A stretch of DNA of 64,000 bases from Podarcis liolepis (taxonomy: Eukaryota), in assembly GCA_965112155.1 (NCBI GenBank), contig OZ218102.1, one strand, 5' to 3'. The translations under genes were made by a program, and so were the position numbers. Positions 28,384-55,617 of this stretch are shown piece by piece; position 1 is the stretch's first letter, and each line of letters opens with the position of its first letter. A model generated the notes under the pieces. It ran no database searches. It had not been told where the DNA came from and saw only the letters and a list, made by a program, of their open reading frames with translations.

Positions 28384-28557
28384 ATCTGGATAATAGTCTG
28401 TGGTGGGTACTAGGCGCTCAATCAGGGCCTCTAGTGATCCAGAGATGAGACTCCCATCTTGATAAACAGGATCTCCATTCCTCTCTCCTGTATCTGGCTG
28501 CACCTGCCCACTACATCCGGAACCAAGCATGCTGGAAAATATTGGTGTCTGGGGCAT
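28384..28557 (-). CDS. RASGEF1A: RASGEF1A first coding exon (exon spans 28563-28384; ATG at 28557), N-terminus and start of the REM/RasGEF-N domain
   Basis: Translates MPQTPIFSSMLGSGCSGQVQPDTGERNGDPVYQDGSLISGSLEALIERLVPTTDYYPD (58 codons), matching the RASGEF1A N-terminus as I recall it. Acceptor ttttgcag|GAAACTATG at 28564/28563, donor GAT|gtaagt at 28384/28383, phase 0. Confidence 0.95.
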
Positions 28558-46271: not shown

Positions 46272-46417
46272 TACTACTGTTTCATAATATTCTTCATCAG
46301 CTGATATTTTTCAACAGAATATGTAAGTAAGATTCATGCTAAGGATCCGTGCTCACTAGACAGTGTAGCTGCTGATCAACTATTAGCCTACGTCTTGTGA
46401 TTGGCCTCCTTCCTTGG

Positions 46418-46564
46418 CAGTGGCGTAGCGTGGGGGGTGCAGGGGGGGCCGGCGGCACCGGGCGCAACATCTGGGGGTTAGGGTTAGGGGGCGCAAATCC
46501 ACGGGTTAGGGGGTGCAAATTACTTGCCTTGCCCCGGGTGCTGACAACCCACGCTACGCCACTG
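46418..46564. mobile_element. Young hAT (Tip100-like) MITE, 147 bp
   Basis: 17-bp perfect TIR CAGTGGCGTAGCGTGGG, exact 8-bp TSD TTCCTTGG (46410-46417, 46565-46572), CpGs intact. Confidence 0.9.
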
Positions 46565-49500
46565 TTCCTTGGGCAGCTGGAGAATGGGAGAGGAGGAGGA
46601 GGAGGAGGAGAGGCCGTGGCCCCCCAGACTGACGTGACGTGCTGGCTCTGAGAGGCAGGTAGAGGGCAGGGTTGCCCTGGGCAGGAAGGAAGGGGGAGCA
46701 GAAGGAGTCTTGATTTTTTTTATATAAAAGAAAATGCTTTGTGTGTCCATGTCAAATCTTGCCCCTTTCTAAAATTTATTCATTGGTTTTTCTTTTTTGC
46801 AAATCTACCAAAGAATAAAATAAAATAAAATTGGGATCATTGAGTTTTCTCAGGACGAAGTCTACTGTGTCCTATTGCTGTAGTGTGGGGGGGGGCACTC
46901 TCCCTTCTTGCGACAGGAAATGCTGTACAGGTAGTGGTGGCTGTGGATGCTCCCAGTAGCACATTTCCCCCCACATGGGACTGGAGTATGAATTATTAGT
47001 CCCTGCATCCTTAGTTGGAAAGTGATGCTATCCCATTCGTGCTTGGGAGGAGGCTTTGTGAATAGTATCTGAAACATCGCTTCTCCACCAAGGATGCTGG
47101 GATATGATTCTAGTCCCAGTTCTCGGGGCAGGAGGAGGAGGAAAGGAAGAGATGGTTTTCAGGGACAAATGCAACCTCTGCTTTCTCTTCACTTCCTACA
47201 TTTTTTCCATGGTGGGGCAGGGAGCTTGGGAGGCAATGGCTCGCAGACTGAACACAGTTCTGCTTGCATCAGGCTGCAAGCCATCCTATGTTCCCCTTGT
47301 TCCTTCTTGTGAACATTTGTGGAGGGGTGTGTGTGTGTTTGCCTCTCCTCAAATGCTTGCAACTTTCCTACTAAAATTGTACCAGCGTAGCTGAATGTGG
47401 AAAACCCCTTATGTCAAGATGCAAGCACATGAATGTTTCAGCAAATCGGCAGAGACAACACAAAAGTCTGCTGATGTCAGTCTTTAAATTGGTATTTTGG
47501 GATGTTTATAAGCTTCCTCTTATTTAACATCAACATTCCCTTTGAAAGCTTTTCAAGCCACAAGACATCAGAAGCAGCAATGTGTTAAAGAAAACTAAAA
47601 ACAACAAGGCTAGCAAGTCAGTTTAATAGTTCTGGCAGGCAACAGCAAAGCAACTTTCTTTATTTTCCCAGGTTAGATTTAAGCTGTTGCTTTCTTGTAT
47701 AATTTTGAAGGATCCCATGTGTGAAAGTGACCATGAGACAGACACAAACTGATAAAACTTAGGCACATGAGCCTTACGTTTACTAATACAACAATTTCAG
47801 AGCAAACCTCAGCAATGAAAGTTTCCAAAACACTGATCTGAGTCATTGCTTAACTCCATTTGCAGAAAATCCCCATAGAGGTGAGATTATCTTGCTCTGA
47901 AAGGAACAAATGCATTTATAAAACTATTATTTTGCAATGGATCCCTGGCTTGATTGGCCATATTCACAAAGTTCTGGAAACAGCTTTGCCTTTTCTGGAT
48001 ATGTGTTCCAGCGCTATACAGTATTAAAATCCTAGCAAATAATGTTTTTAAAATAGCAACAACTTTTTGCTTCTCTGCTCTCTTGGCAATAGTGCTAAAT
48101 ACTTACACCATGTCTTCTAAGGTATCCCGCCTGAAAGACATGCAAATCAGCCATCCTTTCCAACTGCTTCTACTGTATGCTGCCCATTTAGTTAGATGCA
48201 ATGTCTTGTGATCTTTACAAACAGTTTATTTTAAAAAGTTTTCAGAGCAGCCTGCCAGTTTGGCATATACACTAATAAACACAAGGCTACCTCTGACTTT
48301 CCAAACAAGATGTAATCCAATAAACAGATTATAGCATCCTGATTATTGTATTCTTGTTTATTTCCAAAACTCCTTACCCATGTTCAATTCCAGTGCATAC
48401 AATACAAGCATCCCTTTGCAATAGTGTAGAAGCAACAGTTGCCACCAGTGGCTTGATGCACCTTGCAATGTTTCCATGGGATGACAGTGCCATAAACAGT
48501 CTTCGTACAACTAATTTTGACTATTAAACAGCAAAGACTACCCAGTTTGCAAATAGTGGCTGATGGCTGCTACAAAACTTGGGTGCCTTCCTCTCTCTAC
48601 CCAATGGTGGCAAGAGCCATGGAGTTCCAGGCACTCACCCAGGGTCTGTGGTCCTTTGGGGAATTGAGACATGGCGGAGACTCATCGTTTTAAGAAATAT
48701 GGTTGATTCACCTATTTACACCTTCAGTCTGCATAGAGGGAGTCCAGATCTTACAGCAGGATCATTTCAAGAGAGACTTGTATCCCACAGCAGTGCAGCC
48801 ATGGAGTCCAAGGCATCTCTCCTAGCCTACCTGCAGCCAACCTGCCCAACATGGATCCCAGTCCTTCTTCCTTTTCCTTCTTCCAAGCAACCCTTGCTAA
48901 AGACTCTTCCTATCACCTCATACCCAGTAACCCTGGCAACCTTCCAAACCCCTGTCTCTGGGCAGGGGGGAAGGACATTTTTCTTGCCTTGCCAATAGCC
49001 CTCAGTGGCCCTATATTGTTTCTTAATGGCCCTAGCTTGCCCAGGAATTACTCTGCAGTTTGTATTTCTCCCTTCACATCCCAAATAATCAAAATCCTGC
49101 CATTTATTAATTTCTTGGGGTTGTTTTTTTTTGGGGGGGGACGGGTCCCTCTTCCAAATCTATAACATGGCTAACATTGATCAGTGACCAATAGCTTCTC
49201 CTGTAACACAAAAGAGAGCTGTGTGGATGAAAAGTTTTTTTCCTTTCCAAGATCTGAATGGCTGATGCTGCCAGTAAACTTCCATAGATATTATCTGTGC
49301 GACAGTGATGATCATACATTTCTCAACAGCCTTTGATGGCTTATGCAGGAAACCTTCCTTTGCATGGCGCACTGTGATAATGACCTGTGGACATAAGGGA
49401 TGGATAATGACTGAGCAGAGCTCTTGAGCCAGGGCTCAGATAAAAAGTTGAAGGAAATCTTATCCAGATGCATCCTTTCACGGTTACAATCAATCTGAAC

Positions 49501-51672: not shown

Positions 51673-52739
51673 CTGTAGGAGAAGACCAGTAGTATTTGAG
51701 AAACTGCCTTTCAGTAAAGTTTGTTCACCGTTACTGATCTTGATCAGCTACTGAGAAAACTCAGGGTCCCCTATAATACAGCTTGGAAACCACTTCACCC
51801 CACAAAACTGGCTCTCTGTATCCTGCACATACACACTGTAGACAAAAGGGTGGAATGACTAGCAAGGTGAGAACTACAGAGAGCAGAATCCACTCTGATT
51901 AGCAGTGTGCTAAAGGATTACAAAACTGGAGTGATCCTGAGCACATGATCCTGTAAGCTGTTGCCCTACGACCTTTTTGTTTTGGTTGTGGGCTATCATT
52001 TGCATCTCGAGCTAAGTATGTTGATGGCTTGCACAACAGCACTTCACTCAGAATCAGCTCAGTCAACGGTATCCATACCAACCAAGACCATATGCCCGTA
52101 AGCTATACCAGCAAAGCTGCACCCTTCCCCCTTGCAACTCCATACACACATATGTGCCATTCCAGGAATCTTAAGATTTGACAATAAAAGGCTATTACCT
52201 TTCTCCAAGAACATATTATTTGAAGAGACAAGGCAAATGCCTCTGTCGCCCACTCAAAACTTCAATTCCTGCTATTACAAAAGAGAATCACCTCTCTCAC
52301 CTCTTGTTCTCTCTAGTTTCTCTGGTTAGACAACTGAAAAGGGGATAGCCATTAGAATTTTATTGATTCACTATTTCTGTATGGGTACACATAGCCTTTC
52401 TGTGCATGGACCTTTTCAGACAACTTTTAAAGGAGAAGAAATAAAGAAAACTTCTTAGAACAAGTCACAAAGACAGAAAACTCATTCTCCCATTTTCCAG
52501 GCTCAGTCTCTTCCTCTAAAAGAAATACTTTGCTTCTATTGGATTTTCTTCTGCTAATGTTAAATGTGCACATTGTATGATTGTGTGGTATTTGGAGCTG
52601 GCATCGCACCATTTCTCTGCTTTTACACTGGTGCAAGCATCCTTGATTGCAGCAAAGTTGTTGGCACCTGTCTATCTTGAGACACAATGGAGTACATTTC
52701 TTGGGGAGAAGTCAAAACTGCTGTGTTAACAGGACCAAA

Positions 52740-53030
52740 GTGACCTCCCCAGGGTGCAAGCCTGGGAAGTGTGCATGGAGGTCCTGGGCTGCCCAGATGG
52801 CAAGACCCCCCTCTTGGCAGAGCAATTCATTTGGCACCAGCATGGCTGCATGGCCACTGGAATGAGGTGTATAATGTGCCATCCATCTTAGGGCCTCCAC
52901 TCCAGATTTGGTAGGGTTTGCTCCTTAGCCTTTTCTTCTCCCAAAGATGTCCCTCAAGGCTGTGGAGGTTTAGGGTCAGTTTTCCTTCTCCTAAGTGGGC
53001 TGTTTTCCCAGGCTGACAAGTCTCATCAAA
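52740..53030 (-). mobile_element. Probable RTE-clade LINE 5'-UTR remnant
   Basis: Minus strand reads GTCAGCCTGGGAAAACAGCCCACTTAGGAGAAGGAAAACTGACCCTAAACCTCC, resembling the 5' motif of RTE-type elements as I recall it. Confidence 0.4.
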
Positions 53031-53079
53031 ATAAAGGAGAAGAATATAGGATGCAACAGTTCATGGGGGTACACTAGGC

Positions 53080-53966
53080 CAGTGTTTCCCAACCGGTGTT
53101 CCGCGGCACACTAGTGTGCCGCCGAACATTGCCTTGTGTTCCGTGGGAGGGAGACGGGCGAGTCGGGCGGCGAGAGGCGGGGCGGCGGCGGCGAGCACAC
53201 GCGGGGCGGCGAGCGAGCGAGCTCCCACATCCCATCGCCGCTCGCTTCGGCCGGCCTACTGGAGGAAGGCGCGAAAACCCGGCGGGCTTTTGGGTGGGCG
53301 CCAAGCAAGAAAGGCGGGAAGGCTCTGGTCCCTCCCCTCCCGGCGGGGCTCCCGCACGCACCTTTCTGCGCCGCCGCGTCCCGCCTGAGCAGCAACAGGA
53401 GGAGGAGGAGGGAGGCCAGCGCCGGCCGGGTCCCCCGGGGGAGCGGGCGCTCCGGGCTGCTCACCATACCCCGCGTCTCGGGCGCAGCAGCCGGCAGTCC
53501 GAATGCATCCCGAGCCGCGCTGCTCTCGCCTTGCCTCCTTCTTCGCGCCTCCTCCCGGCTCGCGCGCCGTCCCTGCGCGGATCCGTCCAGCCTCCGGCCG
53601 CCGCCGCCGCCCCCTCCTCTTCCTCTCCTTCCCCCACCCACCAACCCGCACGGCGCGCTCCCACCGCCCCCGATGGGCGCAACCACTTCCGGGTCCGCTG
53701 CAGCCGCCCCTTCCCCGCCTCCGGCAGCCGAAAGTCCCCCAGCGGAGCCCGTCTGGCCGCTCCCCCCGCTCCCTGCCCACCTCCCGGTGTTGAGGCGCCC
53801 TCTTTCGTTGCTTCACGGGGAGGGAAAAAACTTTGACTTTTGTGCGTCCCTCCCGGCGTGACGCTGCGCGCTGACGTCACGGGGCGGGGCTTTAATGGTG
53901 GTGTGCCGCGAGATTTTTTTCCGGTAAACAGGTGTGCCGTTGCCCAAAAACGTTTGGGAAACACTG
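53080..53966. mobile_element. Non-autonomous hAT (Buster/Charlie-type) DNA transposon, 887 bp, carrying GC-rich cargo
   Basis: TIRs CAGTGTTTCCCAA(C/A)CG (13 bp perfect, 15/16). Exact 8-bp TSD CACTAGGC at 53072-53079 and 53967-53974, matching the nnnTAnnn Buster target pattern. Subterminal GTGTGCCG/GTGTTCCG repeats at both ends and a perfect 20-bp palindrome GCGGCACACTAGTGTGCCGC at 53103-53122. Confidence 0.9.
53465..53890 (-). promoter_or_regulatory. CpG-island promoter-like and first-exon-like cassette inside the hAT element
   Basis: Very CpG-dense. GC box GGGGCGGGGC at 53881-53890, full CRE TGACGTCA at 53872-53879, half-CRE at 53858-53863, ETS/GABP CCGGAAGTG (minus) at 53692-53684, a (GGC)n tract, then ATG|gtgagc donor at 53465/53464. 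Activity is inferred. Confidence 0.6.
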
Positions 53967-54349
53967 CACTAGGCAGTTTCTGCTATTGGACTAAGTACTT
54001 CCTCTGAATAGAGAAGCAGCTGCACTATTGCTCAGTAGTCTGGTTCTTAAGTTATGCAAGCGATGTGATTACTGCTCCCCATAGCTGCTTTCCACCCTGC
54101 TCCTGTAATGGATGAAGGGCATGTTTATGCAGCTAAAAGCTCATCAGCATCACCTTCTTAACTCAGCCTTTGTTGCTGGTGTGGTTCTTCTCATGTGATC
54201 CTGCATCTCTTTGTGGTTCATCCATTCCTACATTACTGGAGTGATGTGGAACCTAGGACCTGGTTTTCTGTACCAACTGGTTCATCTTGTTGTTTCCAAC
54301 AGCGGCTAGTCTGGTACCTCCCCTGTTGATTGTCTCGATATGGAATACA

Positions 54350-54495
54350 GAGGTATAGCACTTCTGAATTTTGAAGCATCCATAGCTAAAAACAGTTGAT
54401 AGACCTTTCTCCATGATTACTCCTTTAAAATGTCATTGAGGACGGCACTCATTGCCACATCATGTGGCAGTGAATTCTATAAGTTAAGTATACAT
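54350..54495 (-). mobile_element. CR1 LINE 3' fragment
   Basis: Reverse complement resembles the CR1 C-terminus (WNSLP.DV) and 3' UTR. Confidence 0.5.
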
Positions 54496-55617
54496 TTGGG
54501 AAGGGGGAATTAAGCATGCAAGCCCAGACTACACATTGATGTAAAATATAGTTTGATCCTTGTTTGCCGACACTATTGCAGAATAGGGCTCTAAGCTGCT
54601 TTTGGTAGGTTGACCCCCAAATCTTTTATTACCTGACCTCTATGCATACTCCCACACACACTTCATTTCCAGCAGATCTAGGGAAAAACATTAAACATTA
54701 AAATCTCAAACAGGATGCTGACCACCTAGGCTGTTGACATTCTTAGATAACCCCTCTCTCACTAACTAGACTTAATCTAAGAATGTCAGCTGCCTAGGTG
54801 GTGAGCTTCCTGTTTGAGAAATTGACTAGAGCTTCAACAGAAAAGTTTGCCAAGTCTGCTGAAAAGTCAGTCTCCATGGACAGACTGAAGACCTATTGGA
54901 TTCATCAACCTCTGGGGAAGCACCATTCTAGCAAATCCCTCACCCTGTGGGACTCAGACAAATGGGACTTAGGCATGACTAAGTTTTGCTGAAAATATAG
55001 CCACTTTTAACTAATGTTTATGTAATTTCTGCTGATGAAATTATCTGAGGGGAAAAACTATTTCTATATGTATCACCACTTTTCTCTCAAATCTCCCTTG
55101 AAGTTCTGCCACCACCAGATGTCAGAAAAAAGAAAAACGAAGATGGGGGGGACGCCGCCGCCGCCAGTTGCAGCATGTCTCTAAAATCTAACATTTTTCA
55201 ATGCTCCTGTTAAAATAAGTATTTAGGCTATTGTTTGTTCTCTTGAAGGCATTAATGCTCATTGCCAAGATTACAGAAAATATAGTAGACATCAGTGCTT
55301 CTGCATCCCTTTAAGGGGCTGGTATGTGATGTTGTATTACAATGGATTTGCAAATGCAGAGCAGTGGCTATAAACACTTACTCAAGGGACTATTCATGTC
55401 TCAGCCCATCTGAAACTGGCGCACACAGAGAATGTGGGTTTTATATAAACAAGCTATATATAGATAAATGCAGCTTGTCCTTTACTCTTCTCCTTTCTCC
55501 TGTGAGGTTTTTGGAAAACCAAGTGAGGCTTCTTGCCGTCTGTGTAGTACGTACACCCTTCAGGATTGCATGTAAGCTTTGGCACTGAGGGTTGAAAGAT
55601 GTGAGCACTGTGCTCAT

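Follow-up and report, generated by a model that had tools for sequence, protein, structure and literature searches.

Plant genomes are shaped to a large extent by DNA transposons that carry fragments of genes. In rice and maize such transposons are described as Pack-TYPE elements (PMC8903248). In animals the Pack-TIRs (TIR, terminal inverted repeat) are regarded as rare, and mostly as single-copy relics made without transposition (PMC8277862). Here we analysed a stretch of 64,000 nucleotides, one strand, from the lizard Podarcis liolepis (assembly GCA_965112155.1, contig OZ218102.1), hereafter the window. At positions 53080-53966 the window holds a hAT-type element that lies upstream of the first coding exon of the gene RASGEF1A, in the same sense. 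We think it probable that this element is a very young copy, polymorphic for its presence, within a subfamily of 887-bp non-autonomous hAT transposons that carries a captured gene 5' end and has about 40 copies per genome.

Tan et al. (2021) found 370 Pack-TIRs in 100 animal genomes, 208 of them hAT elements; nearly all were single-copy and were attributed to gap filling independent of transposition (PMC8277862). Multicopy Pack-TIRs numbered four in these 100 genomes, three from frog and one from alligator (PMC8277862). Pack-hAT-N8_XT of Xenopus tropicalis, with 3 copies, carries CAPSL's 5' untranslated region (UTR) (PMC8277862). The lizard element is like Pack-hAT-N8_XT in being a hAT without transposase that has TIRs, 8-bp target site duplications (TSDs) and what appears to be a 5' fragment of a host gene, that probably spread by transposition and that is perhaps transcribed as chimeras. 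It differs in its number of copies, about 40 that are near-identical in two species, and in that the site is occupied in some genomes and empty in others. The cargo also differs, being a CpG island that includes an exon and a splice donor and not a UTR only. For Pack-hAT-N8_XT the parent gene is known; for the lizard element there is a lead. No report of such elements in lizards was found in the literature searched.

Plant Pack-MULEs and other Pack-TYPE elements are likewise non-autonomous TIR transposons that pick up and amplify gene fragments. Pack-MULEs reportedly favour GC-rich gene 5' ends, as Jiang et al. are said to have described in PNAS in 2011, and the lizard cargo is also GC-rich and similar to a 5' end. 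Pack-MULEs are however Mutator elements with long TIRs and 9-bp TSDs that occur in thousands, whereas the lizard element has a hAT backbone and is found in a vertebrate. With ordinary hAT MITEs (miniature inverted-repeat transposable elements) of squamates and other vertebrates, including those of Charlie/Buster type, it shares CAG-type TIRs, the 8-bp TSD, subterminal repeats and a family size of about 10^4 copies. A typical MITE has no gene-like interior, whereas the lizard subfamily holds an exon-containing CpG island of 0.55-0.62 kb. The element is probably a Pack-type hAT, and as such of a known kind, but its copy number and mobility are out of the ordinary among vertebrates.

The element is 887 bp long and has a GC content of 71% and a CpG observed/expected ratio (o/e) of 0.99, compared to 43% and 0.27 for the window as a whole. 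Using a length >500 bp, GC >55% and CpG o/e >0.6 as criteria, it is a CpG island. It is the sole run of consecutive CpG-island-grade bins in the window, where three isolated 200-bp bins elsewhere also pass. Both ends carry the 13-bp TIR CAGTGTTTCCCAA, which has two exact matches in the window, one at each end of the element. hAT TIRs are short, about 10-25 bp, with a YARNG-type start, and the start of this TIR, CAGTG, fits that type. The length of the TSD, 8 bp, is that of the hAT superfamily. Its sequence, CACTAGGC, matches nnnTAnnn, the TSD type of the Buster/Charlie clade of hAT elements, and not the Ac-type nTnnnnAn; as a single site is too few for a consensus, the Buster assignment of the preliminary description is at most tentative. 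The subterminal repeat GTGTGCCG occurs four times in the window, each time at most 66 bp from an end of the element; 0.46 occurrences are expected and none of 100 shuffles reached four. The two left GTGTGCCG/CGGCACAC repeats pair as a hairpin with an 8-bp stem at 53104-53121.

A 13-bp inverted repeat is by itself common, with 49 pairs at most 5 kb apart in the window. A TIR of at least 11 bp together with an exact flanking 8-bp duplication was found twice in the real window, at this element and at a MITE at 46418 described below, and in none of 30 block shuffles. TIRs, TSD and subterminal repeats are all exact, and more than chance would give. A preliminary description of this DNA had taken the CpG-dense block to be one insertion bracketed by TIRs, subterminal repeats and a TSD; all of these are in place, and the site is empty elsewhere. 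It had also noted the lack of a transposase open reading frame (ORF), in agreement with the absence of Pfam domains from the five internal ORFs that we tested. No transposase-like frames were noticed among the minus-strand frames of the window or, on the plus strand, within 52000-55000. Mobilization of a hAT element depends on a transposase with a BED finger, an RNase-H-like core and a hAT dimerization domain. TIRs and a TSD around a transposase-free interior are among the marks of a Pack-TIR, and all of these are present.

We compared the region 52100-54950 with four sequencing runs. In brief, X4 consists of DNA contigs from a second individual with the same species label as the best-matching sample, and X11 of DNA contigs from a related sister species, here called species F. 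Run X15 holds contigs of species F with a library type guessed to be RNA, and X23 raw RNA reads of species F (12% of the run). Two contigs, one of 1,773 nt in X4 (depth 12) and one of 1,839 nt in X11 (depth 11.5), join 53071 directly to 53967, skipping 895 bp with 8 shared letters. Their depths are the same as those of the unique flanks. As the joint retains one CACTAGGC in both genomes, it represents an unoccupied target site. A filled allele was not seen in the contigs of X4 or X11. The flanks differ from the window at 16 of 1,753 positions (0.9%) in X4, and at 51 of 1,840 (2.8%) in X11.

Because the site is empty in X4 and X11, the insertion postdates the split from species F, and at least one animal labelled like the best-matching sample lacks it. 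The insertion is very recent or polymorphic. That it is either very recent or kept unmethylated had been proposed in the preliminary description, together with a search for an empty site with a single TSD in relatives. We found that site in both the second individual and the sister species.

The interior of the element is present in about 40 near-identical copies per genome in these two related species. In X4, a single contig spans 53278-53865 at depth 474 with 1 difference, where flank contigs have depth 12. In X11, a single contig spans 53278-53625 at depth 446 without differences, where flank contigs have depth 11.5. In both species this amounts to about 40 times the depth of single-copy sequence; there are 0-2 differences along the 350-590 bp compared, and the depth of the interior is flat at about 470 across 53348-53731. 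For individual contigs that differ 40-fold in depth, an explanation other than multiple copies is difficult to find. With such copies in two species, the element is not one capture dropped at this site, as the preliminary description had it; a capture would have taken place earlier, and the composite element would then have spread. The consensus of the cargo in species F (53278-53865) differs at two positions, 53807 and 53815; the unique flanks differ by about 2.8%. The near-identity of the cargo between the species could be due to very recent spread, to introgression or to slow decay of an unmethylated CpG island.

The arms belong to a much larger family. Bins 53060-53251 and 53828-54019 have summed contig depths of 26,000-208,000, compared to 12 for single-copy sequence, with 80,000-208,000 in the left arm and 114,000-151,000 in the right arm. 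This is 170-470 times the depth of the interior, and other interiors are attached to the same arms. The arms, 53080 to about 53195 and about 53817 to 53966, are a MITE family of roughly 10^4 copies. Among the loose ends listed, other members leave the element sequence after 53121 and 53195, and other subfamilies join it at 53817, 53828, 53846 and 53881. One subfamily joining at 53881 keeps TGACGTCACG just upstream. The family to which the arms belong exists also without the cargo, as is expected of a Pack-TIR. Between the left arm and the cargo is a transition segment. Bin 53252-53347 has a depth of 1,000-2,200 compared to about 470 for the interior, and the figure of a few hundred elements given for this segment below is a rough back-calculation from bin depths. 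The parts of the element are as follows.

53072-53079, no strand: left copy of the TSD, CACTAGGC, 8 bp, exact; the single copy kept in the empty-site contigs of X4 and X11
53080-53092, plus strand: left TIR, CAGTGTTTCCCAA, 13 bp, exact
53080-53195, plus strand: left arm with two GTGTGCCG/CGGCACAC repeats, based on summed depth and divergence points
53196-53262, minus strand: transition segment, apparently common to perhaps a few hundred elements, based on loose ends at 53246 and 53262
53263-53816 (53196-53816 at most), minus strand: subfamily-specific CpG-island cargo in about 40 copies, based on contig depth and a homologue, P0001
53817-53966, minus strand: right arm with a cAMP response element (CRE), TGACGTCA, at 53872-53879, a GC box at 53881-53890 and GTGTGCCG at 53901-53908 and 53932-53939, based on depth
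53954-53966, minus strand: right TIR, 13 bp, the exact reverse complement of CAGTGTTTCCCAA
53967-53974, no strand: right copy of the TSD, CACTAGGC, 8 bp, exact

Rearranged relatives of the element were also seen. In one family member the arms are joined in opposite orientation (53094 to 53921; 58 reads), and in another 53885 is followed by 19 other letters and then by 53195-53262. As RNA reads and contigs show such different layouts, the family has many rearranged subfamilies. A second copy of the arms or of the cargo was not found in the 64-kb window, and no Rfam match was found over 52000-55000. The 24 nt at the start of the left arm had no exact match in JGI metagenome contigs or IMG/VR.

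Another intact hAT-like MITE, which belongs to a separate family, is located at 46418-46564 of the window. It has a length of 147 bp and TIRs of about 17 bp (CAGTGGCGTAGCGTGGG and CCCACGCTACGCCACTG) and is flanked by a perfect 8-bp duplication, TTCCTTGG (span 46410-46572). A repeat with very high copy number, probably a short interspersed nuclear element (SINE), is found at 52676-52963, about 110 bp upstream of the insertion. Its summed contig depth is 12,000-40,000 compared to 12 for single-copy sequence, its internal-deletion joints are numerous, and RNA reads match it on both strands.

On the minus strand, the cargo at 53263-53816 reads as a 5' region followed by a first exon and the start of an intron. 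The features of this reading, including the two in the neighbouring right arm, are given in their order on that strand.

53890-53881, minus strand: GC box, in the right arm
53879-53872, minus strand: CRE, TGACGTCA, in the right arm
53692-53684, minus strand: ETS/GABP-type motif, CCGGAAGTG, in the cargo
53508-53461, minus strand: upstream open reading frame (uORF) of 15 codons, ATG at 53508, overlapping the main ATG and with two further GT sites within
53467-53362, minus strand: coding part of the first exon, ATG at 53467, 35 codons and 1 nt (phase 1), with the signal-peptide-like sequence MVSSPERPLPRGTRPALASLLLLLLLLRRDAAAQK
53361-53360, minus strand: GT of the splice donor, AAAG/GTGCGT at 53362/53361, based on the motif and on the end of an X15 contig

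The ETS motif is followed by a leader rich in GC that contains (GGC)n. Between the donor and the transition segment lies intron-like sequence of about 100 bp. The anatomy of a gene 5' end had been recognized in the preliminary description, and the ETS motif, leader, ATG and donor are indeed found on the minus strand. Its account of the promoter motifs holds in part. GC box, CRE and ETS motif are all present, but GC box and CRE belong to the shared right arm and not to the cargo.

Run X15 is probably RNA, in which the cargo donor appears to be spliced in other copies. It has zero depth on the unique flanks. The exon bins have depths of 52-72 and the intron bin (53252-53347) a depth of 20, whereas the DNA depths of the same bins are 446 and 2,172. 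A 504-nt contig of X15 (depth 52) stops at 53362, which is the last base of the exon, whereas the DNA contigs extend to 53278. A branch exactly at 53362 is what is expected of a mixture of spliced and unspliced RNA.

A search for protein-level relatives of the cargo in 5.8 billion clusters gave a single one, P0001. This is a public, unannotated ORF of 183 amino acids on a 1,239-nt Logan contig. It runs through leader, exon and donor and aligns with the cargo over about 150 residues. Three blocks are invariant: ADPEVVAP.GGGGS at the ETS site, ARDAFGLPAA..ETRGMVSSP at the uORF and ATG context, and ASLLLLLLLLRRDAAAQKGA at the end of the exon and the donor. Outside these blocks, the intron included, P0001 has diverged. 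This pattern of conservation fits the 5' end of an orthologous gene in a more distant species, as far as an alignment can suggest this. Searches for homologues of the 233-aa frame and of the exon region, among proteins of 128-408 aa, gave P0001 only. A phmmer search with the 35-aa exon against 1.84 billion representatives gave no matches, and the ORFs of the element itself are not in the protein collection searched.

The exon encodes SLLLLLLLLRRDAAAQK, that is, poly-Leu followed by xDAxA. The signal sequence of human DCBLD2 ends in LLLLLVLLLLLEDAGA (PMC13570295), and the resemblance is only a short one. As a lead, we consider exon 1 of DCBLD2 a candidate source of the cargo. DCBLD2 has about 775 aa, which is outside the 128-408 aa range of the protein search.

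Several points weigh against a young, multicopy Pack-hAT with a captured gene 5' end. The copy number comes from contig word depth and is not a strict copy count. That X4 is an individual of the same species follows from the run label and from 0.9% flank divergence only, and the filled allele is known from the assembly alone. No TIR-free parent copy was found. The protein searches with the exon gave P0001 only, and P0001 might in turn be some other species' copy of a transposon. That X15 represents RNA is a guess, and the raw RNA reads of X23 cover the interior patchily, at a mean depth of at most 6. The contig of X15 crosses from the cargo into the arm, where it reaches 53865, so that the transcripts derive from transposon copies or read-through and are uninformative on a parent gene. 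It should be noted that the preliminary description proposed a Pack-hAT with the promoter and first exon of another gene. The hAT insertion without transposase and the gene-5'-like interior are supported, but the parent gene is not. As a refuting outcome it had named that the interior is the unvarying body of an abundant MITE and does not stem from a host gene. Half of this applies: the body is indeed multicopy and invariant, and a host source is putative.

The strongest alternative is that the interior is DNA of the transposon's own. It would then be an internal-deletion derivative of an autonomous hAT, comprising promoter (the CRE and GC box of the arm), leader, first exon and partial intron, or else non-genic GC-rich filler. 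We regard this as unlikely, but as an explanation to be taken seriously. On the same view, 75% GC and (CTC)n repeats would have produced the signal-peptide reading by chance. This alternative agrees with the location of CRE and GC box in an arm common to thousands of copies, and with the fact that GC-rich DNA yields long ORFs in all frames. That the protein searches found neither a parent gene nor an annotated protein with this exon points in the same direction. However, thousands of other members of the family do not have this interior. The depth is flat at about 470 over 53348-53731, single contigs span 53278-53865 unbroken, and there is no internal deletion junction among the loose ends listed (there are 588 further ones). 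Transposases of the hAT superfamily start with BED-type zinc fingers or similar, and a poly-Leu signal peptide is unlike such an N-terminus. P0001, finally, shows conservation in promoter-like blocks and a diverged intron.

The putative captured 5' end is in sense with RASGEF1A, the exons of which are on the minus strand. The relevant exon is given here.

28563-28384, minus strand: first coding exon of RASGEF1A, with acceptor ttgcag/GAAACT, ATG at 28557 and donor GAT/gtaagt, based on sequence

Two downstream exons have weak RasGEF_N matches, below the Pfam cut-off. We take the gene to be paralogue 1A and not 1B or 1C, an assignment based on the human protein. The cargo donor at 53362 is 24.8 kb upstream of exon 28563-28384 on the same strand, in line with the distance of about 25 kb noted in the preliminary description.

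It is doubtful that the element already serves as an alternative promoter and first exon of RASGEF1A in carriers, with splicing from 53362 or from an ATG/GT site to 28563. The element does have the sense orientation and the distance of 24.8 kb, a good acceptor lies 6 nt before the ATG, and the donor is apparently used in RNA from other copies. The sequence is also of CpG-island grade with CRE, Sp1 and ETS motifs. However, the RNA that was compared comes from a species with an empty site, and the interior has a low RNA depth even with its approximately 40 copies taken together. The supported donor is out of frame: splicing 53362 to 28563 joins 106 and 6 nt, and a TAG follows after 17 codons of the RASGEF1A exon. 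A chimera that uses this donor would as a consequence have an overlapping uORF, with no fusion protein. Two GT sites, 53465/53464 (after the ATG) and 53470/53469, are by arithmetic in frame with the RASGEF1A ATG, but the RNA-like contig of X15 reads through the uORF stretch and through both of these sites. On frame arithmetic and the TAG after 17 codons, we rejected a fusion that would lead in frame from the main exon into RASGEF1A.

A reading of the CpG island as the native promoter of RASGEF1A or as an assembly artefact, with coincidental flanking repeats, for which its being the only CpG island of the window, upstream and in sense, might speak, can be dismissed in view of the precise empty site with one 8-bp copy in two genomes, the approximately 40 copies elsewhere and the TIR and TSD structure found in none of 30 shuffles. 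The empty site rules out both the native-promoter and the chance-repeat readings. The element is not the ancestral or native RASGEF1A promoter, since the site is empty in two genomes and about 40 copies are found elsewhere. The preliminary description had warned that an annotator could take it for the native promoter, and the insertion is indeed recent and its site empty in two other genomes. No other CpG-island block was seen across 28384-64000. The native RASGEF1A 5' exon and promoter are either not a CpG island or located beyond 64000. In the latter case the element is in intron 1 and not upstream of the gene.

Returning to a young Pack-hAT with a captured gene 5' end, we suggest the following course of events. 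The arms would carry in cis what a hAT transposase acting in trans needs, namely the TIRs and the GTGTGCCG repeats, along with CRE and GC box. On a single occasion, a MITE of this kind may have taken up 0.55-0.62 kb of a cellular gene's 5' end, through gap repair or template switching. Such models for Pack-TIRs place the new sequence between retained arms (PMC8277862). The composite element would then have spread by cut-and-paste with 8-bp duplications, using a hAT transposase in trans. Each copy is a potential portable first exon, consisting of the CRE and GC box of the arm and the ETS motif, exon and donor of the cargo. With every new insertion a promoter-like first exon and its donor would be put in place, and chimeric transcripts that include downstream exons could start from there.

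Taken further, a still-active vertebrate DNA transposon might be spreading a cassette of promoter-like CpG island, first exon and donor, in tens of copies that vary among individuals. It would then do in nature what activation-tagging or gene-trap vectors do, and give host genes such as RASGEF1A polymorphic alternative promoters and chimeric 5' exons. This is an improbable reading, which we put forward only tentatively. Sleeping Beauty T2/Onc is an engineered activation-tagging transposon with promoter and splice donor. The likeness is one of function only, in that a promoter, a short exon and a strong donor lie between TIRs and can drive downstream exons in sense. The T2/Onc vectors are artificial Tc1/mariner elements with proven promoter activity, whereas the lizard element is natural and its promoter activity putative. 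If the family does act in this way, the near-identity of the cassette between two species with about 2.8% divergence in their unique flanks would mean very recent spread, possibly with introgression.

With about 40 copies, and with presence that still varies among individuals, the family offers a live vertebrate system for cargo capture and for the effects of mobile CpG islands. For annotation, it follows that the sole CpG island upstream of RASGEF1A here is a private or polymorphic insertion and not a conserved promoter. In lizard population genetics, insertions of this kind are candidate regulatory variants and useful markers.

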